A stretch of DNA of 27,409 bases from Penicillus capitatus (lineage: Eukaryota > Plantae > Chlorophyta): contig OZ287703.1 of the NCBI GenBank assembly GCA_965649825.1, forward strand, positions 588,213 to 615,621, given 5' to 3'. The translations under genes and the position numbers were made by a program. Shown here one piece after another: positions 1-25,542 of the stretch. Under the pieces are notes generated by a model, which saw only the letters and a program-made list of their open reading frames with translations, was not told the origin of the DNA and ran no database searches. Position 1 is the stretch's first letter; each line of letters begins with the position of its first letter.

Positions 1-3000
1 ATGCGGCATGGAAGCCATCGTCGTCCATGTCCTCAGTCGTTCCGCCCAAGTTTTCTAAGACTTGACGATCCAGCTGTTCGATCAGAGCATCGACTCTTTC
101 AGAACTATCGGGAAAAACAGGGAACCGTGAGTCATTGTCTTGAATGTATGCCATTGATGCAAGGAATCCTTTGCGATAACCGCGAGAGCCATTCAGAAAT
201 CTGCGTCTCGATCTCAGTCCACTTCCCCGAGTTGGACGATTCAGCAAGCGATTCGGGAGAGTGCTCTGATTGAATCCGAAGAGAATGGCCACATCGTGTC
301 CGGAGAACTTCGGGCATGCGAAAGACAATTCGACATCGTTGGATGTCGAAAGGGTATTCAAATGACGATGCAGCTCTCCGCTGTGGCATCTGAGATCCTC
401 TAGAATGGGACGCACTGTGATCATCAAGAGATTTTCTGCACGACAGACATTGAAAATCGCATCCACAGCAGCTTTCACTTTGCCAGTCGTCCACCCAGAC
501 AACACACCTGCGTACTTGCCCAGCAAATAACGGCCACGCAATTGAATGAGCTCATCGAATGCAGCGTCTTGCACTTTGTCGCTATCTTTTCCATCCGTCT
601 GAAAGGCCATTCTCATGGAGAGGTCATCCGAAAAGATGTGAAGATTGGAGAGTCCTTTCAAAATCGCGCATCTCTCATCCACCTCTTTGCACGAACAAGC
701 TTCATACAATGCCACAAGAGCATTGTTCCACACGGAATTCTCTTTGCAGCTGGAGAGCATATCCAGCAGATAGCGAATCTCATCTTTCATGGTTGGCCGA
801 TATGAGATGATCGCATCCAATTGCTTCCACTGATAATTGAAAGACTCCAGATAAGCATGATCACATTCGGCATGCTGTACATCTGTAAGAGAAAGATCCA
901 TTGCATTGATGCAGTTCATCTTTTCAGATTCGAGATCATGGAGCTCTTTTGATGTGACAGTCACTTCGTTTTGTGTTTCTTCTGCCCTGAATTCGGATAG
1001 CTTTGTCCTGAGGTTGTTTAACTTGACCTGATATGTGGCCACTGAGATTTCGTTAAGCTCGTGGTGATTCATGCGATCGAGTGCCTGGACAGCCTTGATG
1101 GCTTCCTGCATAATTGCCGTCAGCGGTTGCGGTCGGTCTTTGGCATTCTTCCACAGATCTTTGAATTGCTGCTTCAACTCAGTAATCTGCTGCGCAACGA
1201 TATCTCTCTTGCGGCTCATATCTTGGTCCCGCGAATATGCCGAGCTTCCTTCGCCCGCACTAGGTTGGGATGTGCCCGGATCGTGGCCGGCTCCACTTCT
1301 TTGCAGATCTTCATATTTTGCCTTCAGTTTGCCAAAAAGGTTGTCCAGATCGTTCTTCTGGAGCCAGTCCTGTTCAATCGACAGTTTCTTAGTCAGAGCA
1401 TTCAGATCCTCCTGCCAGGTATCGAAATCCGTGACGGGTTTCGTGCTGTCAAACTTCATGTCTTCTCCTTCGATGATCAAGAGACCAGTGAAATAGGCAA
1501 CGGTTTTTGAGACAAGCACACAAATTTCGTTAACTGTCTCCCAGATTCTGGAACCTCTGGGTTTGAAGTATCTCGTCGAGTACCGTATCAGAAAATCTTT
1601 GAGCTTCAAGACTGGCAAAATGAAGTCCAGAGCAACGAAGATGTCTCCGAACTTATCCTCTGCCTGTTGCAGAAGACCCTTGAGACGCAATGTCAGCTCC
1701 TGGACTGGACAATCCTTCAGTTTGTCCACAAGTAGCTTAAAACTGAAAGCAAACGATGCAAATTCACGTTCCGATGACAGCAGTCTCTTCTCGATGTCTT
1801 TCAGTTTATCCTCGATGTTCTGCTCCATCATCTCGATCTCTGTCTGGTCAAAGGGCTTGGCTGCCGCTGCAAGCATCTTTCGAGATTTTCTGCTTAGGCG
1901 ATTTGATTCTGTCTCAGTTTCTCTTATGCTATTATCAACACGCAAGAGATGACGCGTGAGTGTATCTTCCGACTCTTCAAAGAGGAGACTGATTGCATCC
2001 TTGTACGCCACCATCTGATTCTTCAGGTCCGTGGTGAACTCGTCGACTCTCTTGTGATCAGATGCGGCAGAAGCATTGTTGAGGTGGGGAAGAGTGGTCA
2101 ACGTGTAGAGACAGGCTACCAGAGTGGATCCCAGTCTCGATAGGCGACCATCAAAAGAGCAATCTCTCGTTAACTGGCATTCTTTCAACGATATGGCATA
2201 GTCCATCTCACGAGATTTCTTCCACTGCTCAAGCCATCTCTGAGCTGATGAGCTGCCCGGATTCCACGTGTAGTTCATCACTTTGATCGACTTCTTCTTG
2301 CTGTTCTCAGTCGGTTTCTCATCTTCGATGATGACAAGAGAGACAAGATCCGAGAGGGAACTGCAAGAGCTGAGTTCACCGACCAAGAGTGCTGCCCTTG
2401 GACAGCCACCATCAGCCATATCCACATCGAGATTTTCATCACAGCACTTCACCAGTCTATAAGGTATGCTGCTCTTGATCGTTTGGTTAAACAGAACTGC
2501 CCAGACCATGCAGAGTTCGCTCTTGCAGATGCTTTCTTTGGACTCTTTGAGTCGCATGCGCAGTCGACATCGAGTGGTAACATCGATTTTGCTGAGCGCC
2601 GGATGATTAGATTGCACTTCTTTTAAAAGATACTCCAGAATGCTGCCATGGAGCTTGACGGCATCATCGAATTCGCTCTGCACAATGAATGCGCAATCCG
2701 ATGACCTCAACAGATCGTCAAACCTCTCCATTGGTGTCCGCGGCGCCATCTGACAGGAAGCTTCTTCCCCGTGAGGCACGGCAGTCGATGTCGATGGTCC
2801 ACCTTCTTCAGAGCTTTCCGTCCTTCTGCCTTTCGTGACTGCATCAAAGACTCCTTTTACCATACTGAAGCATTGAGCAATGGCGCCTTTGCCTTCAGAC
2901 GGTTCCTGTGGTTTTGGATTCAACAAATCATCCAACAAGGAGCGCATGTCTGACATGATTCTCAGACGACTAAACAATCTCTGAATCTCCAGTACTTCAT

Positions 3001-6000
3001 CTGCAGCGATGCTCTCTTGATGGAAGAGCATCAGCCTCTCGTCCAGAAGGAGAGATACCTTGAAGTCGAGTGCAGAAAAGACATACACCATGGCAATTCT
3101 GTTGGCTTCTTCCTTCGGCTTTCCTGTCTCTTTCAGCAGTCTCAGAATCGATCCCCTGAGCTTGTCCCTATCTATCTCTGCGAAGGTGTCAGCCAGTCTC
3201 TTGTGGAGATTGAATTTCAATGCCTTGTCTTGGCAATTTTGCTGATGTTCGCCCAAATCCTCTGCTTTCTTGGCAAAGTCGTCGCCTTCAAGGGGATGGA
3301 AGTAATGCACCAGATGTCGCACGGAAGAGAGTCTTTCTATGAGTTCTTGAATGTCTTCCAGATCTTGACTGCAACAACCGACATCGCTGTCCAGAACACA
3401 ACTCAGTGTCTTGAGGACGAGACTCAGATCCAGGACAAATGCTTTTCTCTGCTTCCAGTCGACAAACGAGGAGTTGTTGACAAATCGCTTGACCATTCTC
3501 TCCAACTTTTCCGGTGTTTGCTTGAAAAGTGCCAGTGTCTTGTTTTCTGTCGTACTGAATTCTTTCAGATAATCAGCTAAGGGGCCTCCCTTCTCGCTGC
3601 AGAACTGAGAGAATTCTGATGCACTGTGAACTGTTCTGGAGATCTGTTCTGCATGCGCCATCTCATGAGGGTACAGATGCGCAAAGAGCTTTTCAAGAAA
3701 CAGAGCCAATGCCTTAGAAAAGCTGCCCTTGTTCTCAATACTCATCACTTGCCTCAACAGGTGTTTTGCGCAAGTGTGAACGAATGGAGCGAAAACAGAT
3801 CGCAGCACTCTGCTCTCTTTCTGGAATGGTGTCAGGGTATCTCTCTTGCCGTCGATGACAGAATAGAATCTGTGCATCGGAAGCAATGTCCTTTCTTTGC
3901 AGGTTTCATGCATGGCTGTCCGCAACTCCTCCAGATCGTCGTCTGGCTCAACAATGGCAGTGTAGACTCTCCATAATCCCCATACAGTAGCACTGAACAG
4001 CGGCTCTCCTCTCTTCAGCCAGGTACGGGCGACAGACAGGGCCTGCTCAAGCATCCTGAAACTTATTTTGGAGTCTTGCATGATGGTGATTTGAGACGTC
4101 TGCGCCAGTTTCCGTGCCTTAACATGAAAAGCGACGGCGAGAATGGCGGCCACAATGCCGCCTTCGACGGATCCGAGCGCTTCAGAGGCAATCTCGACCG
4201 TTTCATGGCTCTCCAGTGAGCGTAAGTCTGGATCAAGGACATCTCCATCAATCTCGGGCAACCAGATCTTGATCATTCTGTTCAGCAGCGGGTTGGAGAG
4301 TCCGAAGGTGTTGATCTTCTTCCTGTCCGCCGTCGCAAAGATGCGGGTGGTAAGATGGATGCCGGCACCAGGCTTGAGCTCCTCGCCCTCCGAGTGCTCG
4401 TAGAGGCTGAGAAACGGAGTCTCTTCGAACAGGGACAGCAGTCGCTCGATCACGTCCGGCGATGCTGCATTGATGTTGTCGAAGAGGATGAACGACCCTG
4501 ACTTCAGCGCCTTGATAAGATCAGACTCCACAAACTTAAAAACAGTCGATGAAGAATCGAGCTCAATCGATGACAATGTGTTCTTAAGTGCAGCTGTCTT
4601 CTTCGCCAACGCTTCCTGCATCTCCGATCCACACTCTTCAAGGATTCCAAGCACCAACTCCACATTTTCAATGACTTCATGCATTTCGTCAATCGAGAGA
4701 TTTGATTTGTTTTTGGAATAAAGCATCTTCATGGCCTCATAGAAAGCAGCACGGTTGATCTGAAGAATCTCTCCCGAGTGCCCGAGTCCAAATCTCGCAA
4801 CATCATCTCTCAGCTCAGGTATAGTTTTCTTCAGTTCCTTGGTAATGTCGCTTGTGGTAAAGGGAAGCCACTGTCCGATGAGATCGGCGACTTCGAAATC
4901 CCGATGAAGTGACAAGACAAGCAGAGGGATGCCTGTGATGGCAGCCAGCTCCTTCACGAGGGATGTCTTCTTGGAGCAGGTGGGTCCTTCGAGCAGCACT
5001 GCCCTCTGGGACTGGCTGGCCGTTGCCAACAGCTCCAGCTGCCGGATCGTGTTTACTGTGTGCACCAACGATCCCTGAGACGCACGAGCTTCGTCCTTCT
5101 CCATGTAGACATTTCCAATTCGCAGAAGATTGCCCACAGACAAGTCGATGGATGGATGGTCTCCCTGATCCAATTCCATCTGAGGTGGCTCAACAACTTC
5201 GTCGATGACGTCTTGGATCTGCCCGGCGGCTAATCGATTGTCGAATCGATGTTTGAACACCAGCTGAAGAGCCTTGCGGATGACGCTTAGGATAACTGAG
5301 TTCTGATCAAATGCCTGCTCGGTCTCTTTGCTTCCATCGCATACCATCACTGTGTGATGCGATATCTGCGTCTCGATATTCCCGGTCACAATATCCCGGA
5401 CAGCCGCCAGGTCTCTCAGGTTAAACTTGTGCTTTCGATTGGCTCCCGGAATCTGTCCACTCTCCACTAACTGTTCGACCCTCTTGTAAACCTCAAAGAT
5501 GTGCTGCAGATGATCTTCAGTGATCAGCTTCTTCGAACTGAGTGTTTGAAACTGTTTTTCCAGAATCTGTGTAAGATCTGTGTCTGTATAGGATTCCATT
5601 TGAACAGCTGTAAAGATATTCTTAATGGATCTCGACAGCTTGGCTCTGCCGCCTCCCTGCGCTGCCGGATTCATTGTTGCAAAAATCCGTATACCTTTGA
5701 GGGAAAGGCGACCTGAATCCAGTTTGCCTGGAATGGAAAATCCTTCTGTAGCGGCAGATCCATCGAGCAATGGGACAAGAGATTCCAGCACTTGCGCAGG
5801 CAGCAGATTGATTTCGTCTAACAGGATCCATTTCTGAGATTTGAGAGCCTTTAGCAGCGTGCCATCTCTCCATTTGAATTCTCTTCGGTCGTCGACATAA
5901 AGTGGCATGACAGCGCCATAAAACTGCTCGATGGAGGTGTCGCCCGAGCAGTTGATGCGTTCCAGATCCGTTCCAAGAAACTGGGCAACCTGAGTAATGA

Positions 6001-9000
6001 CAGCAGTCTTGCCTATTCCGGGAGCTCCTTCGAGCAACAACGGCGAATTTGTGCAGACAGATGCAAAAACGCGAGCCATGTTCTCAACGACCGAATCCGT
6101 CGGACACAGAAACAGATCGGGCAACTCAGATTCTTCAGATGCCTCTGCTGCATTCGACATCATGCTCAAGGAGAGGCCGATGCCTTTCAATGAAACCACT
6201 CGGCCGCCCTGATCTTCACTCTCCTCCACAGTAAACGGATTGTCTTCCACAGGAAGTGCATGATCGGGTTTCAGATCCTCAAATGCGTTTGGAAAGAACT
6301 TCTGAAGCACCTCGTTCTGGATATCAGTTGGATAGCCTGCCAGATAGAAGAACTTAGCTCCCAGCATGCATCTCTTCTGGAGGCTGAGGTTCCTTGGATG
6401 CTGTGTTACAAACGTGATCCATCTCAGAATCCGTCTGAAGTCTTCACAGGGATGCTCGGGGTGAGCTCCGACGATTTCGGATCGGATGTCTTTTACCTGG
6501 CTCATGAGATATGGCAAAGAGTCCATTTCGCTGTAATGGAGCTCCTGTCGAAACTTCTCCTCTGCGATGGACATGATGTCAGACGTCTGATAGACAGGCA
6601 CTCGAATCTGCGTCAGTCTGCTCATTGTGGCAGCGCTGAGCTGCGGCTTCTTGTTCGCCGAGTCCAAATGGGAAGTGGCTATGAAGCAATAGCCTTGATT
6701 GGGGATGTTCATTTCGGCAGCGATGCTGTCTGAGAACGACACGTCTTCCGGAATGCTGAACGTCGGATCCACTTCCAGAGCACTGTTCAGTCTTTCAGTC
6801 ACTGCCTGAGCACAGAGATCGTAGTCTTCCACGACAAACGCATGCTCCATGGTAATGGCCTTGACGAACGGACCGTCCCTGAACATGAAGCAGGGTTTGC
6901 TGTTTTTCACATCTGTCGAACGAATGAACAGTCTCAGTTGCTTCAGCCGATGCACCATTCTCTGCATGGCAGCAGGTATGCTCTCGCCCATGATGTTATT
7001 CGCCAATTCTGGTATCTTTGCGACGACATCATCTATGAGTGTCAGGTGATCATCTTCTGTTAGCTTGGCACTGTTCTCTCTCGGTGAGTCTAGATCTTTG
7101 TTGTGATCATCAGGATCTGCAGATGTGGATGCTTGGATGCCATGTCCTTCCCTCTGTGCGTTCGAGTCTTCTGTATCTCCATCGTCATCCACATCAGTCT
7201 CGCCGTTGACACTGCCATCCGATGAGCGATCGAATTCGAATTCCGGGTATTCGTTTTCGTATTCGCCATCAGAGGCTGACTGCTCGTCTTCGGCATCGGT
7301 GCCAATCGGGTCTGACAGATCTTCGTACCCAGGATCGAATTCTTCTCCATGCAATTTGCATTTGAAGCGCAGCACTCTTCTGTACAAACTCTGGCGAAGC
7401 CGGCGAAGATACGTCCTTCCTCTCACTGTCTCTCCCGAACGTGGTTGAACTTCCAGCTCGTTGTCTAGATAAGAGAAAATGAAGTCCCCCGTAGATGCCA
7501 GACTGCTCAGCACGTCCACGAAGGACACCAGCTGCACTTGGCCAATCAGGTCCGTTGCCTCAGACTGCGACGTCAAGTGGACGCGCTGCACGCTCTTTGT
7601 CATCCCTGACAGCTCCAGCCACGTCTTGATGAGTTCTGTCTTGAATGCAGATTCTCCGTACAACAACACGGGTTCGTTGGCCTTCATGGCAAAGGCAAGA
7701 TCAATCAGCTTGTGCTGGAAGACAGCAGGAGGTCCATGTCGCGAACGGCTGCCTCTCCACAGAGGACTGTTGTCGAGTTTGAATCCAGGGAAGTGGACGT
7801 GAAGGTGTCCCCGGCAGAAACGCACCCCATTTTCCTCCTGCACGATGTTCTTCTTTGTCAATGCCTCTGCCTCAACCTCTTCACTGGCTCCAAAGCTCGA
7901 TTCAACGAGCCTCAGCAGTTTGGCTGTCTCTTCCTCTGTGATGGCTTGCGGAGCCAGCAATGACATGGTCACACTGGTCCAAGTCACTCTTTGCCTTTCG
8001 TCTTTCAGGAGTTTGTATCTTCTCACGATCTTGATGATATCTCGCATTGTTAGCTGAAATCCTTCAGCAGGAGATAGATGATATAACTTGGCCAGCCCAT
8101 CGACATTAAGCTGCCCATCAAAACCGGCATATCTTTCGCCATGAAATCGCTTGGCGAGGATTTCCATAAACTCATCTCGTGGGAAGTCTTCGATGTCAAC
8201 TGTCAAGAATCGATTCCGTACAGTGACCGGCAAGAGTTTTCGACCATCTCTCCCTCCTCGAGATGGATTCTGAGTGGCGAAGAAGCGGAAGTTTGGATGG
8301 ACACTCAATCGCATGTTGCTTCCAGGGATCTGCACAGTACAGTTTCCTTCCAAGAAAGGCATCAGCGCCGATGTCACAGCCACTGGAGCGAGATTGAATT
8401 CATCGGAGATGAACCAGTGACCGTTCTCCATTGCCTGCACAAGGATGCCTTTCTGAAAAACGAAGCCATCGTTTGCTGGCATCCAGCTTCCAAAGTAGTC
8501 CTGCACTGTTGTCGTGTCGCTGTTACTCAACAGCAGCACTCTGTTGGTTACACCAGCAAATCGACGCAGACCATAGACGAGTGCCGTCTTGCCGACAGCA
8601 GGTTTTCCTTCCAGCAGAACGGGCTTGTTCGTAAGGGCACCCAAAAGAAGTGCCTGTGCATGGCGCTTTCTGGAAGATGTCAGGACCAGATCGCCATCGA
8701 TCGTAAAATCATCAAGCAGTCCTAGTGTATCCAGCACGTTGCTCGGGCACTCCATCTTGCAACAGAGGGAATCCCTGGCAAGAGGGTCCCTTATCTGAGC
8801 AGCGAAGGTTGACATCATTGCGCAATGAAGGGCCCTCTGATCTCCAAGTCTTGGCATTTGGACCATCAGCATCGTCGCCATGTCGATCAACGTGACAAAA
8901 TCTCTGAAGGATGTCAGCATGTGCCGGTTCTCTGCAAAGAAATCTCTGATTTTGAAGCAGTAAGTGTAGATGATTGGGGCAGCCGCTGCAAGACGGTCCA

Positions 9001-12000
9001 GGGGCAAACAGCACCTTAACATGGACTTCAAAGCAGAGAAGAATTCTTCGACGGGCATTCTTGCGGGATCATCGATGTGGACGACAACGAAACGATTGAA
9101 CAGTGCAGCTGTGAGCTCACTGGATGCGCTATCCTGTCCTCTGCCTGCAATGCCTTTTGGAGTGAAGGTCGCCACAATCTGAAAGCCTCTTGCCGGTCCT
9201 GGCACATTAGATACTGTTCCGTCGGCAAGGATGCGAGAATGCAATGGTTTCCTGTCTCCTTTTTCTGTCAGGCACAGCACTTTGGGAGATTCCAGCACAG
9301 GGTTCATTCTCTCCTGCAGAACGGACTCGGCTTGGCCAATGTTGTCGACGATGCAGACACTGCCGTCTTTAAAGGCTCTGGTCAGTGGACCATCTCTCCA
9401 TTCGACTTTCCGTTGAGCGCCAATGATGTCTCCTGGCAGATACTCTCCAAGCATCATTGCCGGTTCACTCTCGCGCGTCAGCGTGACGTGCTCGTACTGA
9501 TTGCCCAAGAGGAAAGCCACTGCCTTTCCGATGCACGTCTTGCCGGATCCGGCATTTCCCGATATCAGAATGGACTGTTCGATGCGGATGGCTTCGGCAA
9601 TGACATCCAGGTTCTCGCACATGTGATTGTCGAGTGCAATCGGCATTTCTGGAACGGAACAAGCAGACCATGACACGATGCCGAGATCGCCGCCAAACGT
9701 GTTCATAAAGATGTCGAGAACCATGTCCCGTGCTTCCTTGAGTCTGAATCGCATGCAGTATCCTTCTGCGCCAATGCGTCCCAATGCTATGAGCATCTTC
9801 GTCTGCAGAACGTCTTCTTTCATGGCGTCTGCTAGCCACTTCGCCAGCCAAGATTCAGAGAACGAGGAATAGATGCCGAAGGTGTTCATGAATTCAGGAC
9901 TCTGAATCATCTTCAGAACGGCAATGTGCGCATCAGCACAAACATTGAAAGCTTTCATCACGTCTTCATTCGGAAACTGATGGAACGGGAAATGTCTTTG
10001 CCAGAATTGGCTGACAAGAAGGATGTCACTCGCGCGACATGGACTCTTGATCTTTGAATACTTCTCAAAGAGACGTTCCAGTGGAGTCTCGCCTGAGTGG
10101 ATGGTTAGGTTGTGCCGATTGATGACGTTCTGAACCAATTGGCGTCCCTCTCCGCGGAATCGACAGCCATAGATCAGCCATGCGTACTCCCCTAGCTTCT
10201 CTTCCGCATGAACAAGGCGTTCTTCTGCCAGGATCATGTCTGTCCACATGAGAAGCTCCCGATTGGTGATCGTGGCGTAGCTGCCCTTTTCGGCGCATCC
10301 TTTGAGCTCTTCTCTGAGATTAGAATGAAAACCTGTCATAAGTTGAGACAGTTTTTGAACCCGGTCGACATCGTCGTCCTCCTTGATGCCTTGGTGCATT
10401 TTCTTTGCCACGATCGTTCTCCATTCCTCTGTGGGCAGTTCTTTGAAATGCATCACAGAGAACTGCGACAGAAAGGCATCGCTGATCCGTTCTCTCTTGC
10501 CAGCTTGCCACGGGTTTTGAGATGCAAACAGTCGAAAGTTGGGATGTCTCGGAATGATCTCGGTAGGGGACACGGCAGAGCTTCGGTCAGTAATCGCTAT
10601 CTTTCCCGATTCTATGGCATCGATCACGACCTTCAGAGCGCCCTCTTCGGCCAGATTCATTTCGTCCAGCAGAACCCAGAAACCTTTCTTGAAGCTCTCG
10701 GCAAAGGGCTGAAGCTTCCGGATCGTTTCTCCTTCTCTGTTAATGACAACCTTTGCCAGAAAGTCTTCAGGAGTAAGATTAGAAGACATGTTGATTCGAA
10801 CGAATATCACTTCCTTGCGGCGACACACCTCTGTGAGCGTCGCTGTCTTCCCCACGCCGGTGGATCCGACCAGCAGCACGGGGCTACCATCCTCGGCCAC
10901 CTCTTCTATCTTGGCTATATTCTCTTCTGTAGTGGGGGTCAGTATCATGGGGCAGATCGGTTCGGTGTCTTTCTCCCTTGAATGTGGTACCGTATGTGTC
11001 TGGAGGACAGTTCTTCGCAGATGACTGCTCTTTAGTGTGAGATCGGAGTGCCCGAATGTTTTGACCATTCTCTGCAAATCTGCCAAGGGCGCATTCTCTG
11101 ACGTGATGTTTTGGCCTTGTGGAAACTTGGCGGAAAAGAAGGCAGGAACAGTCGTCATGTACTCGATCGACTGAGCTAGTTTATCTTCCTTCTGTGACTG
11201 AGACTTGCCATCGATCAGAAGAGAGACAAGCTCTTCGACTTTTGCAAGAACACTGCTTGCGTCATTTCTTTGCAGCAACCCGAAGAGCCTGTCAAGCATG
11301 GCAGTGAGTGACGTTTTCAGAGGATCATCTGTCGAGTCAGCAGGGACATCGATTACATACTGCACCAGCCAATCGAAGAGCTTGACGTCCTTCAAGGATT
11401 CCGTATCAGCTGCTGTGCTGTGTGCGATCGTGAGCCATTCACTGAGCTGATGAACTGCCTTGTCTGCCAAGACACGGACAAAAGATCTGAAATCTTCCGA
11501 CGGGATGTCGCACAGCAGCATCTGGTCCACGTTGGACATCAGTGCAGCGATTGGATACTGGCAATCTTTTAGATCAAGGGCACAGGCCAAACGGATTACA
11601 GCTAGTACAGCATCACTGGAAACGCCGGCGTCTCCAGGGGAAGGACACAGCAATGCCTTACACACTTTTGGCCAATCAACGGATCCTTTCGCGATGTTGC
11701 GAACTTCACAACGACCAGTGTCTGATTGCAGAAGAACGTCGAGGGACATCAGCAGCGGTGCACTATTGTTGCTCTTCATGTTCTCGCAGAGTTTAAAAAG
11801 ACGCGTCACATCATCCACATTAAGATTCCTGCACCACTTGTGCAACCATCTGGCTAGGCAATCTTCTTCAGAAAGCACAACAAACGCACGAGGGTTCACG
11901 TGAGACACGCACAGGAGACAGGAAAAAATAGAGAAGGATGCTTTTCTGTGACAGTAATTCGAAATTGTTTTGAAATCCGAAGACACACTGAAAGGAAAGT

Positions 12001-13324
12001 CTTCTGCATCGATCGATGCCATATTGTCTCGCAGGGTCAGATAGAAAGAAAACAGCGATTCGACAAAGGCCTTGTTAAGATCAGAGACCTGCACAAATTT
12101 TGTCTCTTCTGCAAAGAACAGGGATAGAAAGTGCAAACGCTCACAGATCCACTGTTCTGGCTTTTTATCTAGGATGTCAGAATTCAGAAGGCACTGACAG
12201 CAAATGTCTAGAAAGCAGGGATAGGCAGTGGACAGTGTGTTTTCAGCACAGAAGGTAACAAACTCACAGATTTTTTCAAACAGCACATCAGACAGAGCAA
12301 AATGCACAACAGGTGATAAAAACAGAAACTCGATTGTGTGAAAGAGAAGGATACTATTATCGGATGCCCCGACGAGCAATCCGTCAAGAAAAAGAGTGGC
12401 GATGTCCATTTCAATGCCATTCAATACCATCTCTAGAATTCCGTTGAGCTGAGCTTTTGTGGAAGAAACGTCAGGTCGGTAGAGATCGATGAGATTCGAA
12501 ACGAATGCATCGAATGCATTTCTAGATGTCCTTGCCGTTATGGCAGCCGTCAGAATTTTCTGAACGTGCTCACTAGTGTCACATCTCCCTTTCTGCGCGA
12601 CATCGAATCCACCACCATCCAAGGTCACTTCTGATGGTCCATCCATACGCGTGTCTTCTTGCTGAGAACTGTCACTGGAATCTGGAGTCATGCCAGCGGC
12701 GACAAAAGGATCGAAAACCAGCGATAGCAGTTCCTGAGAAGCAAGGATATCTCCCACAATCTGAGGGCCGTTCTTAATCTTTCCATGTATCTCCTTGCCG
12801 GTGCCCAATTCGCCACAAACGATGTGTTCCAAGAGGCCAAGGACGGCATCGATATCATTGCCCAAGACGTCTTTCAGAGTCAGCATTCCGAGCAGAATCT
12901 CAGCACTGGGGCCATCATCCTCACTCTGCAGCTTCATTCTCACTCTTTTCTTTATTGCCACCTCTTGTACTGACAACTTCGAATCGTCGTATTCTCTTTT
13001 GCGAAGGAGAATGTCGTAGACGCTGCATGCTTGCGATGTGGGCACTTTCTGCACGAACCAGTTCAGGATCTGTGCCAAAGGACCACAGGCGGCCGTCTTC
13101 GCTTTGAGCACTCTGACTGCATGCGCTTGGACGATGCAGTGGAAGAATGCGGCAGTGCCGTTCTTGGTCAGATCACTTTCCGTCGTTTCGATGGAACCGC
13201 GACGCGTGATCGCATCAACGGCTAGACGGATATCCTGAACTGCCGAGTCTTCTCTCTCGTCCAATGCGCGTTTTAGCGCGTCTTGGAGCATCGAAAGGTT
13301 AACCCACTTTGATGTCGCTTCCAT
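1..13324 (-). CDS. Giant midasin/Rea1-like protein with six tandem AAA+ (MoxR/dynein-related) modules; 3'-partial, >=4,441 aa, continues past the left edge
   Basis: The minus frame with codon starts at positions =1 mod 3 is open from 13507 (in-frame TAA at 13510-13508) to the window edge, and the first ATG is at 13324 (MEATSKWVNLSML...). No ORF in this frame is listed in the track, as expected for a frame with no stop. Walker A-type motifs: GSTGVGKT 10867, GNAGSGKT 9559, GKPAVGKT 8608, GESAFKT 7657, GAPGIGKT 6028, GPTCSKKT 4987. Each is followed by MoxR-clade signatures such as RINCSGDTSIEQFYG, FKWRDGTLLKAL, WILLDEIN, HPNFRLFASQNP and RIFATMNP. About 820 aa of helical N-terminal region precede the ring and >=1,300 aa of helical/coiled-coil linker follow it. 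No MIDAS/vWA domain lies inside the window. The start could extend by an upstream exon. Orthology to MDN1 is not established. Confidence 0.92.
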   Translation of the reverse strand, partial: MEATSKWVNLSMLQDALKRALDEREDSAVQDIRLAVDAITRRGSIETTESDLTKNGTAAFFHCIVQAHAVRVLKAKTAACGPLAQILNWFVQKVPTSQACSVYDILLRKREYDDSKLSVQEVAIKKRVRMKLQSEDDGPSAEILLGMLTLKDVLGNDIDAVLGLLEHIVCGELGTGKEIHGKIKNGPQIVGDILASQELLSLVFDPFVAAGMTPDSSDSSQQEDTRMDGPSEVTLDGGGFDVAQKGRCDTSEHVQKILTAAITARTSRNAFDAFVSNLIDLYRPDVSSTKAQLNGILEMVLNGIEMDIATLFLDGLLVGASDNSILLFHTIEFLFLSPVVHFALSDVLFEKICEFVTFCAENTLSTAYPCFLDICCQCLLNSDILDKKPEQWICERLHFLSLFFAEETKFVQVSDLNKAFVESLFSFYLTLRDNMASIDAEDFPFSVSSDFKTISNYCHRKASFSIFSCLLCVSHVNPRAFVVLSEEDCLARWLHKWCRNLNVDDVTRLFKLCENMKSNNSAPLLMSLDVLLQSDTGRCEVRNIAKGSVDWPKVCKALLCPSPGDAGVSSDAVLAVIRLACALDLKDCQYPIAALMSNVDQMLLCDIPSEDFRSFVRVLADKAVHQLSEWLTIAHSTAADTESLKDVKLFDWLVQYVIDVPADSTDDPLKTSLTAMLDRLFGLLQRNDASSVLAKVEELVSLLIDGKSQSQKEDKLAQSIEYMTTVPAFFSAKFPQGQNITSENAPLADLQRMVKTFGHSDLTLKSSHLRRTVLQTHTVPHSREKDTEPICPMILTPTTEENIAKIEEVAEDGSPVLLVGSTGVGKTATLTEVCRRKEVIFVRINMSSNLTPEDFLAKVVINREGETIRKLQPFAESFKKGFWVLLDEMNLAEEGALKVVIDAIESGKIAITDRSSAVSPTEIIPRHPNFRLFASQNPWQAGKRERISDAFLSQFSVMHFKELPTEEWRTIVAKKMHQGIKEDDDVDRVQKLSQLMTGFHSNLREELKGCAEKGSYATITNRELLMWTDMILAEERLVHAEEKLGEYAWLIYGCRFRGEGRQLVQNVINRHNLTIHSGETPLERLFEKYSKIKSPCRASDILLVSQFWQRHFPFHQFPNEDVMKAFNVCADAHIAVLKMIQSPEFMNTFGIYSSFSESWLAKWLADAMKEDVLQTKMLIALGRIGAEGYCMRFRLKEARDMVLDIFMNTFGGDLGIVSWSACSVPEMPIALDNHMCENLDVIAEAIRIEQSILISGNAGSGKTCIGKAVAFLLGNQYEHVTLTRESEPAMMLGEYLPGDIIGAQRKVEWRDGPLTRAFKDGSVCIVDNIGQAESVLQERMNPVLESPKVLCLTEKGDRKPLHSRILADGTVSNVPGPARGFQIVATFTPKGIAGRGQDSASSELTAALFNRFVVVHIDDPARMPVEEFFSALKSMLRCCLPLDRLAAAAPIIYTYCFKIRDFFAENRHMLTSFRDFVTLIDMATMLMVQMPRLGDQRALHCAMMSTFAAQIRDPLARDSLCCKMECPSNVLDTLGLLDDFTIDGDLVLTSSRKRHAQALLLGALTNKPVLLEGKPAVGKTALVYGLRRFAGVTNRVLLLSNSDTTTVQDYFGSWMPANDGFVFQKGILVQAMENGHWFISDEFNLAPVAVTSALMPFLEGNCTVQIPGSNMRLSVHPNFRFFATQNPSRGGRDGRKLLPVTVRNRFLTVDIEDFPRDEFMEILAKRFHGERYAGFDGQLNVDGLAKLYHLSPAEGFQLTMRDIIKIVRRYKLLKDERQRVTWTSVTMSLLAPQAITEEETAKLLRLVESSFGASEEVEAEALTKKNIVQEENGVRFCRGHLHVHFPGFKLDNSPLWRGSRSRHGPPAVFQHKLIDLAFAMKANEPVLLYGESAFKTELIKTWLELSGMTKSVQRVHLTSQSEATDLIGQVQLVSFVDVLSSLASTGDFIFSYLDNELEVQPRSGETVRGRTYLRRLRQSLYRRVLRFKCKLHGEEFDPGYEDLSDPIGTDAEDEQSASDGEYENEYPEFEFDRSSDGSVNGETDVDDDGDTEDSNAQREGHGIQASTSADPDDHNKDLDSPRENSAKLTEDDHLTLIDDVVAKIPELANNIMGESIPAAMQRMVHRLKQLRLFIRSTDVKNSKPCFMFRDGPFVKAITMEHAFVVEDYDLCAQAVTERLNSALEVDPTFSIPEDVSFSDSIAAEMNIPNQGYCFIATSHLDSANKKPQLSAATMSRLTQIRVPVYQTSDIMSIAEEKFRQELHYSEMDSLPYLMSQVKDIRSEIVGAHPEHPCEDFRRILRWITFVTQHPRNLSLQKRCMLGAKFFYLAGYPTDIQNEVLQKFFPNAFEDLKPDHALPVEDNPFTVEESEDQGGRVVSLKGIGLSLSMMSNAAEASEESELPDLFLCPTDSVVENMARVFASVCTNSPLLLEGAPGIGKTAVITQVAQFLGTDLERINCSGDTSIEQFYGAVMPLYVDDRREFKWRDGTLLKALKSQKWILLDEINLLPAQVLESLVPLLDGSAATEGFSIPGKLDSGRLSLKGIRIFATMNPAAQGGGRAKLSRSIKNIFTAVQMESYTDTDLTQILEKQFQTLSSKKLITEDHLQHIFEVYKRVEQLVESGQIPGANRKHKFNLRDLAAVRDIVTGNIETQISHHTVMVCDGSKETEQAFDQNSVILSVIRKALQLVFKHRFDNRLAAGQIQDVIDEVVEPPQMELDQGDHPSIDLSVGNLLRIGNVYMEKDEARASQGSLVHTVNTIRQLELLATASQSQRAVLLEGPTCSKKTSLVKELAAITGIPLLVLSLHRDFEVADLIGQWLPFTTSDITKELKKTIPELRDDVARFGLGHSGEILQINRAAFYEAMKMLYSKNKSNLSIDEMHEVIENVELVLGILEECGSEMQEALAKKTAALKNTLSSIELDSSSTVFKFVESDLIKALKSGSFILFDNINAASPDVIERLLSLFEETPFLSLYEHSEGEELKPGAGIHLTTRIFATADRKKINTFGLSNPLLNRMIKIWLPEIDGDVLDPDLRSLESHETVEIASEALGSVEGGIVAAILAVAFHVKARKLAQTSQITIMQDSKISFRMLEQALSVARTWLKRGEPLFSATVWGLWRVYTAIVEPDDDLEELRTAMHETCKERTLLPMHRFYSVIDGKRDTLTPFQKESRVLRSVFAPFVHTCAKHLLRQVMSIENKGSFSKALALFLEKLFAHLYPHEMAHAEQISRTVHSASEFSQFCSEKGGPLADYLKEFSTTENKTLALFKQTPEKLERMVKRFVNNSSFVDWKQRKAFVLDLSLVLKTLSCVLDSDVGCCSQDLEDIQELIERLSSVRHLVHYFHPLEGDDFAKKAEDLGEHQQNCQDKALKFNLHKRLADTFAEIDRDKLRGSILRLLKETGKPKEEANRIAMVYVFSALDFKVSLLLDERLMLFHQESIAADEVLEIQRLFSRLRIMSDMRSLLDDLLNPKPQEPSEGKGAIAQCFSMVKGVFDAVTKGRRTESSEEGGPSTSTAVPHGEEASCQMAPRTPMERFDDLLRSSDCAFIVQSEFDDAVKLHGSILEYLLKEVQSNHPALSKIDVTTRCRLRMRLKESKESICKSELCMVWAVLFNQTIKSSIPYRLVKCCDENLDVDMADGGCPRAALLVGELSSCSSLSDLVSLVIIEDEKPTENSKKKSIKVMNYTWNPGSSSAQRWLEQWKKSREMDYAISLKECQLTRDCSFDGRLSRLGSTLVACLYTLTTLPHLNNASAASDHKRVDEFTTDLKNQMVAYKDAISLLFEESEDTLTRHLLRVDNSIRETETESNRLSRKSRKMLAAAAKPFDQTEIEMMEQNIEDKLKDIEKRLLSSEREFASFAFSFKLLVDKLKDCPVQELTLRLKGLLQQAEDKFGDIFVALDFILPVLKLKDFLIRYSTRYFKPRGSRIWETVNEICVLVSKTVAYFTGLLIIEGEDMKFDSTKPVTDFDTWQEDLNALTKKLSIEQDWLQKNDLDNLFGKLKAKYEDLQRSGAGHDPGTSQPSAGEGSSAYSRDQDMSRKRDIVAQQITELKQQFKDLWKNAKDRPQPLTAIMQEAIKAVQALDRMNHHELNEISVATYQVKLNNLRTKLSEFRAEETQNEVTVTSKELHDLESEKMNCINAMDLSLTDVQHAECDHAYLESFNYQWKQLDAIISYRPTMKDEIRYLLDMLSSCKENSVWNNALVALYEACSCKEVDERCAILKGLSNLHIFSDDLSMRMAFQTDGKDSDKVQDAAFDELIQLRGRYLLGKYAGVLSGWTTGKVKAAVDAIFNVCRAENLLMITVRPILEDLRCHSGELHRHLNTLSTSNDVELSFACPKFSGHDVAILFGFNQSTLPNRLLNRPTRGSGLRSRRRFLNGSRGYRKGFLASMAYIQDNDSRFPVFPDSSERVDALIEQLDRQVLENLGGTTEDMDDDGFHAA

Positions 13325-14296
13325 CGTTGCCTGGAGACACAGCGACGCATTGGGCAGTCCGTCGCCGAACGAGGATTCTTCGTAGGATTGAGATTTTTGG
13401 ATGCCGCTCTCGTCGTTGACGAAAAAGGCGAAGGCGCGAAATGTTGCAAGACATCCGAACGACCGCGTGCGCTTGAACGAGACTGTAAGGATCGTTGTTT
13501 TGTGTTCTTACTTTGCAGGAGGTATTTTTCTTGAAGTCGCGAGAGGATCGTTGCTTCCGAACGAATGAATAGTCAACGACCCTTGGAAGAAGATATTCCG
13601 TGCTGGGCACGATGCGTCGCGTCAGGATTTAACGTTGAAAATGACGCGACATGGTGGATGTATCAAAGTAAACGAGATGCTTCGACGGTCGACGCCACTT
13701 CTTGCGGAACACTACGGTCTTCTATCTCCTCTATCTCGCCTTACCTTTTGTTATGTTCATGTCCAGCATGCATTCGGTCTACTCCTTCCTCCTGGAGTAA
13801 TCTCCCATGAGGCGAACATAAGTGAACACGTGAAGATTTCTGTATCGCTCTGATTTCAGAGACAGAAGTTCATCTCCTTTCACAAAAAGACTAGCCGTTA
13901 TGAAGAGACAAGTTCAACGGAACTCTTTTTTCATGCGCATTGCTGGTAAGGTAGATGGTGTGTATATTAAGGCGTCCATAGTTGGTTGGACCTGCAAGGT
14001 GCATACATTCAGTAAGAAGTCTGAAGACTGCGTGGCAATCGCTCTTAATCTTCTATAAGATGGAGGCTCTTTACTTGCACTGTTATGAAATGCACATAGT
14101 ATGTGTGCTATCAAATAGGGTCGGGACGTCCAGATACGGTGGGTGTCTCTTCATGACCACGTATGTACTCACTGAATTCAACATGCGCATGAAATGCAAT
14201 GCATGACGATAATGCCCCATTTTGGCCGCCCTACTGTTCACAGACGTTTCTTCCTCTGTTCTTTCTGGACGTGTTGTTGTGGTTGTCGACACAAGT
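13325..14296. promoter_or_regulatory. Divergent (head-to-head) intergenic region between the giant AAA gene and NOG1; presumed bidirectional promoter/5' UTRs
   Basis: Inferred from gene orientation only. No convincing coding frame and no specific motif was identified. It could hide 5' exons of the giant gene (GTAAG donor-like sites on the minus strand at 13511 and 13744). Confidence 0.4.
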
Positions 14297-16474
14297 ATGG
14301 TGCTCTACAACTTCAAGCAGATTCCAATTGTCCCAACGGCTTCCGATTTTATCGATATCGTTCTATCGCGTACCCAGCGCCAGACACCGACCGTCTGCCA
14401 CGGCGGATGGAAGATCTCGCGTATTCGGCAGTTTTACATGCGCAAAGTGAAACACACTCAGACCACTTGGCACGAGAACCTCGGCAAAATCCTCGAGGCC
14501 TTTCCCACTATACAAGATGTTCATCCCTTCTACTCAGATCTGCTGAATGTCCTCTACGACAAGGACCATTACAAATTGGCACTTGGGCAGCTCAATGTCG
14601 CTCGCAATCTCATCGATCGATTAGCACAAGACTACGTACGTCTCCTGAAGTACGGAGATTCGCAGTATCGATGCAAACAGCTCAAACGAGCAGCTCTGGT
14701 GCATCGCGCTTTCATGGTATCTCTATGGGTCAGTGAGAAAAACTGTAGGGACGCATGGCAACGATCATGAAGAAGCAAGGGCCGGGATTAAAGTACCTAG
14801 AGCAGGTACGGCAGCACATGTCTCGTCTGCCGTCCATTGACCCGAACACACGGACTCTACTCTTGTGCGGTTATCCCAATGTTGGCAAGAGCAGTTTCAT
14901 GAACCTGGTCACGCGTGCCGATGTGGAAGTGGAACCTTACGCTTTTACCACGAAGTCTCTCTATGTGGGACACATGGACTACAAGTATCTCAGATGGCAA
15001 GTGATTGACACACCAGGCTTGCTGGATCGTCCACTGGAGGATCGAAACACGATCGAAATGCAGAGCATTACCGCATTGGCACACATCCGTGCAGCTGTTG
15101 TTTACATCGTAGATATCTCGGAAGAGTGCGGATACACCATAGCACAGCAAGTGACGCTGTTTCAGTCCCTCAAACCGCTCTTTGCCAACAAGCCCATCCT
15201 TATCTGCTGCAACAAAGTCGATGCACGTCCTATGGATACACTCAGCAAAGAAGAATTGACCTGTCTTGAAACTCTCGCAGCTGAGACGCTGAAACTTGAA
15301 GGCGGCGTGGAGTTCATGGAGAGCGATGTGTCCGGAATGCTCTGGCCGATGAGTACAATGAGAGAGGAGGGCGTTATGGAGGTCAAACGTGCTGCCTGTG
15401 AGAGACTGCTGCAACAGAGAGTGGATGCCAAGTTGCAAGGCCATCGATGCGAGACGATCCTCAACAGAATCCACGTCGCCATGCCCAAAGGCGGCATCGA
15501 TCCAAACCGACCCCCCTGTATTCCAGAGAGCGTGTTGAGAGCAAGAGAACAGGCAGTCACTGAGAGTGCCTCCGAAAAGAAGCTCACTGAGAAAGAGATC
15601 CAAGAGGTGATGGGAGGCGGCGGCGTGTACTGGTCGGATGAGCGGAAGGGCTATCTACTTGAAAAGGCCGAGTGGAAGTACGATATCATGCCGGAGATAT
15701 GGGACGGGCATAACATCCTCGATTTCGTCGATCCTGACATCGATCTGAAGCTCAAGGAGCTGGAACTCGAGGAAGCGGAATACGAAGTGAGCATACATAA
15801 CAGACGTGTGCGAGATCTGGGTGGAATGTCATGCAGCATCGAATGGAAGATGACGATCTAGAAGTGGAAGAAGAAGGACCATTGGAACAGGACGAAACGG
15901 AACTGTTAGAGCAGATCCGCCGCCAGAAGCGCATCAGGAAACAAGAGAGCATCCGCGAAAAGACATCCAGGACGAACAATCCCATTGTCTCCAGGTGGGC
16001 CATCCCTATCGACACGCCTCCCTTGACGTGTTTACCTGTGCTAGACTCAATCGTTCGCGTCGTTTGGATCAGATGGCGGAGAAACTCACAGAATTGGGCA
16101 TGGATCCGAGTCTTGTCGTGGAAAGAGTGCGCAGTGCGTCGCGTCATCGCCGACGTCGTAGTCAGAGTCGGGCCAGTAGTGGTTCGCAGATGGATGAGGA
16201 CACCGAAGAGGACGGCACTTCACGGAAGCGGCTGCATTCCTCCAAATCGCGTTCGCTTTCTCGTGGTCGCAGCGTGTCTCTGGCCAAGCCTGCGCAAGGC
16301 AGTGGGCTGAAAGACGTGGCTCAGCGCAATCGTGCTATGCGCCTTGCCGATCGTCACCAACGCCGTCGCAACAAACAGGCACGTCGCGGTGAAGGAGATC
16401 GCCACATTCCAACCCTCAGACCCAAACACTTGCTCACCGGTATTCGAGGCATCGGCAAAACGTCCCGTCGCTAG
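14297..16474 (+). CDS. NOG1: Nucleolar GTP-binding protein 1 (60S biogenesis GTPase), 675 aa; join(14297..14698,14749..15786,15837..15994,16045..16474)
   Basis: N-terminus [32 protein letters not shown]; G1 GYPNVGKSS; [12 protein letters not shown]; G3 DTPGLLD; G4 NKVD; NOGCT-type [22 protein letters not shown]; C-terminal [17 protein letters not shown]. Three GT-AG introns, each exactly 50 nt (14699-14748, 15787-15836, 15995-16044), restore one frame including RAAL|GRMAT. Confidence 0.97.
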
Positions 16475-16547
16475 AAAAGGATGTGATGTGACGGGTGTGT
16501 GATGGCGGTAATGACGCGACTTTCTGTCTTGGATATTGCACGACGCG

Positions 16548-17368
16548 ATGCGTCAGCGCGAGAGCGTTGCCTTTCAGAAGATCGCCGATCTGCAGAAAAG
16601 CATCGTAGCGCTGCAAAAAGAATGTGCCGAGCTGCGCGACGACGGCCGCCGACGACAGGAGTCCTATCTCCGACGCGAGGCGCAAATGCGCGCGACGATT
16701 GAAGAGCTAGAGAATCGAAAACGAGTGATTCACGAAGACGACGAGCCCGATGACGATATGATCATCCAGTCGATCTCACTCTTTTGCCCTTCGCATCTCA
16801 CTCTTTCTGGCGAAACAGGAAATGCCAACAGCAATTAGAGGAAGGGATTTATGCCCTGTTGGAGAAGCAGCGAAAACTCATGGGGCGCTCCGAGATGGAT
16901 GACTTAGAGCGATTCGATGAGAAACTCAAGTCGATCGAAGCGTCCATCCATCAGCGACAGCAACCAAGCAGCACTTCCTCGGCTCGTGCCGTGCAGAACA
17001 GGAAGACAGTTTGTCGATAACCTCGAGAGCGTGTCGTCCAGGTGGTTGTTCGTTGGCAGATCGAAGCGATGGAGGAGCTGACCAATTTGAGGAAGAGCCA
17101 CGCAGCATTGCAAGAGAAGTATCGAGAGGAGTGCCAGAAATCGGCGCAACTCCGAATCGAATGTGCCTGTCTCAAAGACACGGAGGCGCTTCTCTCAAAG
17201 TATCCCACGCTTCCTCAGCCATCTCACTCAAATTCCATGTCCTTAGACAACTTGTCGAGCTCAAATGTGATCTCCGACGAAAAACGAAAGAGACCAAAGC
17301 ACCATAGCACAGTCTATGGAAGCGATATCGCCAACCGTCGCTTTCGAGTGGCGGATCAAAATGTGTGA
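16548..17368 (+). CDS. Uncharacterised coiled-coil protein, 239 aa; join(16548..16768,16819..16990,17042..17368)
   Basis: Three track ORFs are joined in frame by GT-AG introns 16769-16818 (50 nt) and 16991-17041 (51 nt). Heptad-like segments include FQKIADLQKSIVALQKECAELRDD and AMEELTNLRKSHAALQEKYREE. Family not recognised. Confidence 0.75.
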
Positions 17369-17388
17369 GAAAAGGAATTGTGTTATCT

Positions 17389-17893
17389 CTATGACTGTTT
17401 GGCTGTAATGTGTTTGGCAATGAAGTTTTGGAGATCGGATTTGGTTTGACTCAGATTGGCTTCGCCCGAGATCTTGATTCCGCTCTTGGACTCCAATGAG
17501 ATCATCAGCTTCGCATCGAATGCCGTCGGAAAGGCATTGGGATTGCAGATCACTTCAAGCGCAGCGATATCGTCCACATTACCCTCTGGATTCTCATAGC
17601 TGTACCGCATCAGATCCCATCTCTGCGGCTTCTCTGCTGCCTGTTTTTCCTTAAACGTTTGCAACAGTCCATTAAAAGAGCGCCCCAAGTTGCGCGCCTC
17701 ATCTGTGCTGAAGGGCAATTCCACTGTCGATTCGCCCAGATGCAATACCAGTGGCGTCTCTGCGTCCGAGGAGATCCATAACGATCCAGTTCGATAAGGC
17801 GTATCATAAAGCACCTCGTGATAGACATCGAAGACGCCATGGACGACTCGGCCGAGGATGACAGAGAAGCATACGTCTAGCAGCGATCTTCAT
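17389..17893 (-). CDS. Probable plastid-targeted homolog of a conserved cyanobacterial hypothetical protein, ~149 aa; complement join(17815..17893,17389..17759)
   Basis: Exon 1, MKIAARRMLLCHPRPSRPWRLRCLSR, is basic and acid-free, like a transit peptide. A 55-nt GT-AG intron (17760-17814) joins it in frame to ETPLVLHLGESTVELPFSTDEARNL...LEVICNPNAFPTAFDAKLMISL...ISGEANLSQTKSDLQNFI. From memory this matches small cyanobacterial proteins with LEVFCNPNIWPTPFAAKVL...TTEAEL. Start codon uncertain (17893 or 17872). Confidence 0.78.
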
Positions 17894-17979
17894 CGACACG
17901 AAGAGACGTCACATCACGCAGCAGAATCGAATCGACAGACCCTTCAACTGTGTCTGCCGTGCCACATCCACCGTCCCAC

Positions 17980-18540: not shown

Positions 18541-18756
18541 AGTGAATCTGTGGAGTTTCTGTATCCGCGTTTTATCATGGCAGCCTTTGGATCAGACAGT
18601 GAGACATGCGTCATGCCATCGATAAAACGAGGCGGTAAGAAAGTGGATGGCATCGTCGCGTAATTTGACAGATTTTTTCATGGGACCCTTTTGAAAACGA
18701 CGCGTCATTCTTTATGTATCCACGTGGATGATGGACACTGTGTAAGAACATGAGGA

Positions 18757-25357: not shown

Positions 25358-25542
25358 AGACCCTTATTCAGCTGCTCTGCTCGTCAAGTCTTCACGCATA
25401 GGTATGGAAAACCCCAATCGGCCGAAAAGGGATGCAAGGACCCCATACAATGGTTTGTTTAATACCTGAGGGAATTCCGATCGATGGGAGTTGCCGTGCG
25501 TAAAGAGAGACCGATTTTGGGCTCTGTCGTGTGGCAAGATGT

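Follow-up and report, generated by a model that had tools for sequence, protein, structure and literature searches.

A giant midasin-like gene with an almost intron-free body in an intron-rich neighbourhood of Penicillus capitatus

Known Systems and the Giant Gene

Midasin (Rea1/MDN1), an AAA+ ATPase that remodels pre-60S particles, is the described system closest to the gene considered here, which fills the left end of a 27,409-nucleotide stretch of Penicillus capitatus DNA (GenBank assembly GCA_965649825.1, contig OZ287703.1, positions 588,213 to 615,621 of the forward strand; this whole stretch is called the window). The protein of this giant gene resembles midasin in having six dynein-type AAA_5 modules in one chain, the order of modules AAA3 to AAA6, an AAA-lid and a giant size, and its relatives also have an acidic stretch and a C-terminal VWA domain with the DxSxS (MIDAS) motif. 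In contrast to midasin, it has an N-terminal extension of ~790 residues and a post-ring part of ~5,000 residues without detectable similarity to the linker, and its relatives contain three to four VWA domains and an Ig-like domain, whereas midasin has one MIDAS domain. Moreover, the giant gene is found in a small clade only and is nearly intronless.

Processed retrogenes are a second point of comparison. Like them, the giant gene is an intron-poor copy set against an intron-rich gene of the parent type, shows no parental intron position at the two sites checked and possibly has a chimeric 3' end. However, its body of ~24 kb is far above typical retrocopies, its identity to the presumed parent type is ~28%, and the event, if it took place, is older than a deep radiation. 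Two routes of intron loss are also described: a reverse-transcriptase model, in which loss is 3'-biased because the cDNA is poly(A)-primed (PMC3652778, PMC3488318), and microhomology-mediated deletion (PMC3698931). Documented precise losses (PMC3652778; PMC3698931) are matched by one site of the giant gene, where exactly 47 nt are removed, the coding flanks are intact and the sister allele has an AGGTAA repeat. However, only a single such event is seen here, and introns kept at the extreme 3' end misfit the 3'-biased cDNA model.

A combination of AAA_5 with VWA and very long unbroken frames are likewise features of bacterial MoxR/AAA_5-VWA systems and of giant prokaryotic proteins with AAA_5, and genes near Omnitrophota giant genes have AAA_5 in their list of domains (bioRxiv 10.1101/2023.11.21.568195). 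The bacterial systems are only ~25% identical, in matches that cover no more than 62% of the region compared, and the giant gene differs from them in its eukaryotic neighbours, the spliceosomal introns of its relatives and its native composition. Very long exons are known from intron-rich eukaryotes, and such exons are tolerated under intron definition (PMC2614967). The window contains a comparable exon, in one piece and longer than 13 kb, although the genome around it is rich in introns. In contrast to the very long exons of other giant genes, nearly the whole ~24-kb body is exonic throughout the family, and the difference in intron content lies between genes and not between exons of one gene.

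Gene Model and Protein Architecture

The minus strand is stop-free from position 2 to 13507 (4,502 codons); no other long frame without stops occurs in the window's left half, and this one continues beyond the window start. Its first ATG is codon 62, which gives a partial coding sequence (CDS) of 4,441 codons at 2..13324 (minus strand), a single unbroken exon with the C-terminal ~4,000 codons beyond the window. The start at 13324 is accepted because a relative of 5,842 residues (P0233, locus L006) aligns residue 1 to residue 1 with 53% identity over ~4,500 positions, and because the open reading frame (ORF) of the sister locus L002 opens at the homologous ATG. The 61 in-frame codons upstream (13325..13507, minus strand) are stop-free and contain no ATG, and the proteins of relatives begin at the homologous Met. 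This leader, which the sequence-only reading had counted in its 13,507 nt, is probably non-coding. At the level of sequence, 2..13324 proves to be the first exon of a gene that is resident in the nucleus and evolves under purifying selection. Judged by the length of its relatives, the full gene would be ~25 kb and its protein ~8,200-8,500 residues, so that the 13.5-kb stretch would represent about the first half.

Pfam recognizes AAA_5 six times (E=1.5e-85) and the midasin domain AAA_lid_7 at 26.4 bits, above the threshold of 22.7; AAA_lid_5 does not reach its own threshold. AAA3, AAA4-5 and AAA6 align with Rea1 residues 1030-1188, 1424-1856 and 1998-2239, in the same order, and strong PDB matches are limited to the yeast and S. 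pombe midasins, with 328 bits for all 4,441 residues. The N-terminal extension (10958..13324, minus strand; residues 1-789) has no family or PDB match, Pfam placing just the start of AAA1 at its end, and is the fastest-evolving region, with a ratio of nonsynonymous to synonymous divergence (Ka/Ks) of 0.30 against L002. It is followed by the six tandem dynein-type AAA_5 modules (4205..10957, minus strand; residues ~790-3040). Walker A and B motifs are intact in AAA1 (GSTGVGKT/DE), AAA3 (GKPAVGKT/DE) and AAA5 (GAPGIGKT/DE). AAA2 (GNAGSGKT/DN) and AAA6 (GPTCSKKT/DN) have a D-N Walker B, and AAA4 is without Walker A, the motif being degenerate, with ED as Walker B. An acidic insertion (36% aspartate plus glutamate, D+E) lies within AAA4 at 7094..7336 (minus strand; residues 1997-2077).

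The post-ring region (2..4204, minus strand; residues 3041-4441) has homologues only in a small clade of giant ORFs. Sequence searches of Pfam and PDB gave no match at all after the ring, and so none to a Rea1-type linker, either for residues 3101-4441 of the window protein or for 3,340 further residues of the relative L001. The C-terminal part can be read in L006 (27415-35838). It comprises an Ig domain of the VesB/HYDIN type, an acidic stretch in which D+E reach up to 34% per 100 aa, and three to four VWA domains, one of which carries DISAS, a MIDAS motif of the DxSxS type. A weak BACON-like domain also occurs in relatives, and ~5,000 residues of unrecognisable sequence lie between their ring and the C-terminal Ig/acidic/VWA part. 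By analogy with midasin, the protein would work as a single-chain AAA+ ring that pulls partners held by the VWA domains.

Intron Density of the Neighbourhood

The comparator locus L002 was found by way of NOG1, the gene next to the giant gene: an ENA metagenome contig contains a relative that is 95% identical to one NOG1 exon. The locus around this relative, L002, and window positions 4765-25614 are collinear at 83-85% nucleotide identity (84.6% for the syntenic locus). The models of the neighbouring genes were rebuilt by a two-species test against it, which required GT and AG in both species, open frames in both and protein conservation across the junctions; the junctions were hand-curated. 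Since codon bias is weak, codon usage alone was insufficient for exon chaining and either over-chained or missed introns, and two-species conservation was added.

The eight rebuilt neighbours contain 20 GT-AG introns in 9,063 nt of CDS (2.21 per kb), 39-57 nt long with a mean of 48.2, and their longest exon is 1,038 nt. The neighbour figures of the sequence-only reading (22 introns, 9,519 nt, 43-57 nt) were therefore right within about 10%. At the rebuilt density, 29.4 introns are expected in 13.3 kb, and the Poisson probability of none is 1.7e-13. The claim that 13.5 kb pass without a frame-breaking intron is thus borne out, with the correction that coding starts at 13324.

The 5' splice sites of the neighbours are weak, with only GT conserved (GT plus almost any four bases), the 3' ends are YAG, and intron lengths in the window and L002 often differ by amounts that are not multiples of three. 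The narrow length band and the near signal-free 5' sites of the introns in 14699-25401 suggest that length-based intron definition dominates splicing here. Introns that are very short and defined by their length imply splicing by intron definition, which tolerates long exons (PMC2614967). The intron richness of the neighbours is old, because three NOG1 intron positions are also conserved in L003, a locus 76-88% identical and without synteny.

Introns Hidden in Frame

The absence of introns could be only apparent if introns of a length divisible by three and free of stops were hidden in the giant frame. Such introns do occur nearby and make up two of the 21 counted among the neighbours in the window. 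The first is the helicase intron at 19901-19939 (minus strand), a 39-nt GT-AG segment that is open in the window frame; it is recognized as an intron, invisible from the window frame alone, because its 39-nt orthologue in L002 has a TAA in frame. The second is the MsrA segment at 24799-24852, of 54 nt with GC-AG ends and a pyrimidine-rich 3' end. This segment is open in both the window and L002, its removal restores FAG|GSFWG and a contiguous PMSR match, and it is the probable 21st neighbour intron. Within the giant ORF, 186 in-frame GT..AG intervals have conserved ends, and none of them is conspicuous, the best log-likelihood ratio being 5.4. The top ones all lie in the fast-evolving, poorly conserved N-terminus, and a few of these show intron-like substitution patterns.

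On the other hand, the invisible share is only ~10-15% of introns, so that at least 25 of the ~29 expected should break the frame, and none does. Over the 8.5 kb aligned with L002, the mismatch rate is 11.1/8.6/25.3% for first, second and third codon positions, against 19.5% for introns, and this codon-position bias spans the whole aligned length. In this alignment the two sequences differ by indels of 3, 6, 3, 27 and 3 nt and by an extra 47 nt in L002; beyond these there are only two compensating pairs of 1- and 2-nt gaps, each within ~10 nt. The sole uncompensated indel that is not a multiple of three is the 47-nt one, an intron (J2, below) that is present in L002 and absent from the window. 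Moreover, only one insertion of at least 8 aa is found in 4,434 residues against L001, which is ~47% identical. Given zero visible introns, fewer than about 0.5 hidden ones would be expected in the giant ORF, and an absence that is only apparent is very improbable, even if a few stop-free introns divisible by three may be present in the variable N-terminus, which weighs against a strictly intronless exon.

Family-Wide Intron Poverty

An exhaustive phmmer comparison of the post-ring region with 1.84 billion representative proteins gave 12 relatives only. ORFs of 562-5,842 residues account for nine of these, and six exceed 2,000. The loci of the relatives and of the canonical midasins come from samples ERZ25074695 and ERZ26696514 (L001, L006, L009; L002, L007), and a single metagenome assembly includes three or more related eukaryotes of this lineage, with coverages of 344x, 47x and 38x.

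L002: The sister locus has an ORF of 2,494 codons and one of 5,708 codons, split by a single 47-nt intron.

L001: This member, ~47% identical in the AAA-ring part, has two introns (52 and 53 nt), a 1-nt frame change and then an ORF of 4,388 codons. The frame change (~13998-14014) was considered as a third intron, J3, and rejected, as the open frames overlap by just 17 nt and leave no room for an intron. It is possibly an assembly error or a real frameshift.

L006: This member (53% identical) runs through 5,844 uninterrupted codons from its start and then 2,377 more. At its extreme 3' end, short exons are split by introns, such as one of 48 nt (GTGAGA..TCGTAG), and these last VWA exons are the only region of the gene with about normal intron density. 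A 5'-biased retention of introns, the trace of classical cDNA-mediated 3' loss, was therefore discarded, since the introns of L006 cluster at the extreme 3' end and none occurs in its first 5,844 codons. A 967-residue ORF with RVT_1, Integrase_H2C2 and rve, the pol of a long terminal repeat (LTR) retroelement, lies at 3326-6229 of this locus, ~4 kb upstream of the giant gene. Sources of reverse transcriptase thus exist in the lineage.

Distant members: These are found on contigs with ORFs of 1,100-1,800 codons and short gaps.

Across the family, the ~24-kb body has zero to two introns in every sampled member, where ~50 are expected. The intron poverty is specific to this gene and common to the whole family, and it is therefore old. 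Family members that are only 27-53% identical have the same architecture, with one copy per locus. The deep divergence and the single copy at each locus lend no support to the young, expanding family that the sequence-only reading had offered as one explanation.

Residual Introns J1 and J2

The J2 site (6011..6013, minus strand) falls within a glycine codon of Walker A in AAA5 (GIG|K). Its GT-AG, phase 1 intron measures 47 nt in L002 (1250-1296) and 53 nt in L001 (~9913-9965), at the identical site. The window reads through this site with intact flanks, and L006 also lacks the intron. Both J2 alleles begin with GTAAGCG, a strong 5' site unlike most neighbouring introns, and three further giant ORFs start just after the J2 site. 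Because site, phase and GTAAGCG start agree in L002 and L001, and because these three ORFs begin where they do, sequence comparison indicates that J2 is ancestral at least to the group of the window, L002 and L001, and that the window lineage has lost it precisely; L006 has lost it too. The direct repeat AGGTAA (6 nt) spans both splice junctions of the L002 intron. This repeat makes microhomology-mediated deletion (PMC3698931) credible for the loss of J2, and as good a candidate as the cDNA route (PMC3652778).

The J1 site (10846..10847, minus strand) follows GVGK of the AAA1 Walker A motif. Its 52-nt, phase 0 intron is present in L001 (~4976-5027), whereas the window, L002 and L006 lack it. 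The two residual introns thus fall in Walker A (P-loop) codons, in AAA1 after GVGK and in AAA5 within GIG|K. The canonical midasin gene is uninterrupted at both positions.

Canonical Midasin of Sister Genomes

A separate midasin is present in the sister assembly. P0039, a 917-residue exon of locus L007 on a different contig of the same sample as L002, matches the solved midasins with 1,027-1,035 bits and is, by sequence, the canonical midasin orthologue. Since the giant protein reaches only 328 bits over 4,441 aa, compared with more than 1,000 bits for this 917-aa exon, the similarity scores identify the giant protein as a divergent, clade-restricted midasin paralogue and not as the MDN1 orthologue. 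L007 and L002 are inferred to come from one organism, with coverage of 185x and 173x, GC contents of 48.5% and 49.8%, the same short, weak-signal intron style and a tetranucleotide correlation of 0.95, as against 0.43 for a bacterial locus. NOG1 and canonical midasin of this lineage are 44-64% identical to, and about equally far from, their counterparts in green algae, plants, fungi and animals.

The canonical gene in L007 is called as at least 16 ORF pieces, and its chain of junctions gives nine introns in ~5.6 kb of CDS (~1.6 per kb), eight of them 45-61 nt long and an uncertain first one of 87 nt. L009 holds the canonical midasin of a second species, with the exon 89.7% identical, a synonymous divergence (Ks) of 0.34 and 86% nucleotide identity over the locus. 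The L007-L009 distance is the same as that between the window and L002, and L009 is equally fragmented. Over 14 kb of the canonical gene, L007 and L009 differ by 31 indels that are not multiples of three. These patterns mark canonical midasin as intron-rich in the sister genomes. Another very long conserved gene is thus not equally intron-poor, so that the refuting condition set by the sequence-only reading does not hold in the sister genome. Two points weigh against using this contrast without reserve: the canonical gene was read in a sister assembly and not in the window's own genome, and the assignment of L007 and L002 to one organism depends on coverage and composition.

Recent or Ancient Arrival

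The sequence-only reading had suggested that the gene arrived late, through horizontal or viral transfer or retroposition. The G+C content at third codon positions (GC3) is 0.556 in the giant gene and 0.564 in its neighbours, and relative synonymous codon usage (RSCU) correlates at 0.75 between the giant gene and the neighbours and at 0.725 among the neighbours, so the proposed check for a foreign signature in codon usage and GC3 returned a native one. Against L002, the giant gene has a Ks of 0.475 (0.29-0.63 for the neighbours) and a Ka/Ks of 0.20, and the synteny of giant gene and NOG1 is common to both loci. Scans of viral and metagenome contigs yielded no close relatives of the giant gene. 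With native composition and Ks, synteny, no viral relative and a family whose members are 27-53% identical, a recent arrival is not supported at the sequence level. Composition says nothing on an ancient arrival, which cannot be judged from it, and an ancient intronless birth survives from the original suggestion as the best reading.

Proteins outside the clade were searched with a 1,001-aa segment of the translation. Canonical eukaryotic midasins gave 230-341 bits with up to 99% query coverage, bacterial multi-AAA_5 proteins gave up to 210 bits with up to 62% coverage, and all these matches, eukaryotic and bacterial, are ~25-28% identical. The taxonomy of best hits thus places eukaryotic midasins above bacterial proteins, a ranking in which all matches have a similarly low identity (~25%).

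These matches bear on the possibility that the ~24-kb body came from a prokaryote or virus with a giant multi-AAA_5/VWA protein, entered the ancestor of the clade intronless and has since been ameliorated. Bacterial multi-AAA_5 proteins, for example partial ones from Omnitrophota, are detectable at ~25% identity, similar to that of the canonical eukaryotic midasins. The domain mix of the relatives (VesB/HYDIN-type Ig, weak BACON-like and several VWA domains) is common in bacterial giant proteins, and the very narrow distribution and the intron-poor body would also agree with such a source. However, the eukaryotic midasins both outscore and outcover the bacterial matches, the modules are aligned in Rea1 order, composition, codon usage and Ks are native, the viral contigs scanned held no relative, and the closest out-of-clade matches lie on contigs with eukaryote-style short interruptions. 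A prokaryotic or viral source is accordingly improbable.

Origin of the Intron-Poor Body

As the origin of the body, intronless birth is favoured over massive loss. According to this explanation, which we consider about evenly poised between right and wrong, the body was born intronless in the ancestor of the clade as a processed or otherwise acquired midasin-type copy, was possibly fused to intron-bearing VWA exons, and has seen rare intron gains and losses since. A reverse-transcribed or otherwise acquired midasin-type copy would have given the intronless ~24-kb body, which may then have been joined at its 3' end to intron-bearing VWA exons. Afterwards, introns would have been gained rarely and removed again. 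Splicing by very short, length-defined introns would leave exon length unlimited and create no pressure for introns to return.

The main competitor is a DNA duplicate of midasin that bore introns and lost ~50 of them through cDNA recombination or microhomology deletion, perhaps favoured by the risk of splicing errors in a 25-kb message. Intron loss is ongoing in the giant gene, as J2 is absent from the window and L006 and present in L002, L001 and others, and the AGGTAA direct repeat around J2 in L002 is the configuration described for microhomology-mediated loss (PMC3698931). In addition, reverse transcriptase is present in these genomes, as seen in the RVT_1 and rve pol ORF near the L006 copy, the 5' splice sites are weak with only GT conserved, and long exons produced by intron loss should be tolerated where splicing is by intron definition (PMC2614967). 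In contrast, canonical midasin is also very long and keeps ~1.6 introns per kb, which means that length alone does not purge introns, and gradual, length-driven loss fits poorly with this intron-rich gene. The selection against splicing errors in a long transcript that the sequence-only reading had proposed is weakened by the same observation. Moreover, normal density is found at the 3' end only, where poly(A)-primed cDNA should instead remove introns preferentially, and conversion by such cDNA fits poorly with introns that survive only there. Further, no residual intron is common to the giant and canonical genes at the two tested sites (Walker A of AAA1 and AAA5), and the most divergent members are already intron-poor. 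Loss of ~50 introns from a duplicate is therefore rather doubtful.

Several points also weigh against intronless birth. The case for an RNA intermediate or an outside source of the body is indirect: the event would be ancient, the 3' end lies beyond the window, and at an identity of only ~28% to canonical midasin any poly(A) remnant or target-site duplications would have been erased. At this identity, parentage rests on module order. A sweep of intron loss in an ancestral DNA-level duplicate predicts the same family-wide pattern, and the retrocopying of an mRNA of more than 15 kb is mechanistically demanding.

A more specific form of intronless birth, which we put forward tentatively and regard as possible though on the unlikely side, is that the ~24-kb body entered the ancestor of the lineage as one intronless unit, either by retroposition of a long transcript or by transfer of a prokaryotic giant AAA_5/VWA gene, was fused to resident intron-bearing VWA exons and resisted colonisation by introns during a deep radiation.

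Neighbouring Genes

NOG1: The gene lies at 14297..16474 (plus strand) and has four exons, with introns of 50 nt each at 14699-14748, 15787-15836 and 15995-16044; it is the comparator gene. A spacer of 972 nt (13325..14296) separates its start from the divergent start of the giant gene. The head-to-head order of the two genes is present in L002 and absent from L003, L001 and L006, and the proposed check of synteny next to NOG1 thus holds in the nearest relative and fails in the other three loci. NOG1 is a pre-60S GTPase, and the order of genes in these loci indicates that its adjacency to the giant gene is probably coincidental and not the sign of a shared ribosome-biogenesis promoter. The giant gene as an MDN1 orthologue sharing such a promoter with NOG1 was discarded, as canonical midasin lies on another sister contig and the two genes are not side by side in L003, L001 and L006.

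Coiled-coil protein gene and GTG ORF: The coiled-coil gene (16548..17307, plus strand) has three introns (50, 51 and 47 nt) and no Pfam match. It is followed by an ORF of 141 codons with a GTG start (17389..17814, minus strand), which has no intron and no family match and whose model is uncertain. Projected onto L002, this ORF shows five stops; it is either a wrong model, with unrecognized introns or indels, or a non-conserved gene.

Cupin-like and helicase genes: The cupin-like gene (18104..18540, plus strand) has one intron of 56 nt, and its start is not fixed. The gene of a ZGRF1-like helicase of superfamily 1 (SF1) lies at 18757..21930 (minus strand) and comprises 11 exons and 10 introns (39-57 nt).

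LRR protein gene: A gene for a leucine-rich repeat (LRR) protein of the FBXL type (22009..23750, minus strand) has one intron of 50 nt.

MsrA gene: This gene (24732..25462, plus strand) has two GT-AG introns in addition to the probable in-frame GC-AG intron described above. The usual catalytic Cys of its GCFWG motif is replaced by Ser in both the window and L002.

GST_N/glutaredoxin-like ORF: No intron was seen in this ORF (25987..26565, minus strand), which lies beyond the coverage of L002.

Scans of the window found no tRNA genes, Rfam families or tandem repeats.

Significance

The protein family appears to be undescribed, with six midasin-type AAA modules, ~5,000 unrecognisable residues and several VWA domains. 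Two very long paralogous AAA+ genes of one lineage have ~1.6 and ~0-0.1 introns per kb, roughly 30-fold apart. This contrast is unusually clean for separating the explanations of intron density, namely gene length, expression, origin through an RNA intermediate and selection against mis-splicing. The presence and absence of J2 between species that are 85% identical is usable for rates of intron gain and loss in a genome with tiny, weak-signal introns. If the body did enter the lineage once as an intronless unit, the giant gene would be a long-running clock for intron gain and loss in genomes with ~2 introns per kb. The intron structure is thus of value as a useful natural contrast rather than as a new mechanism.

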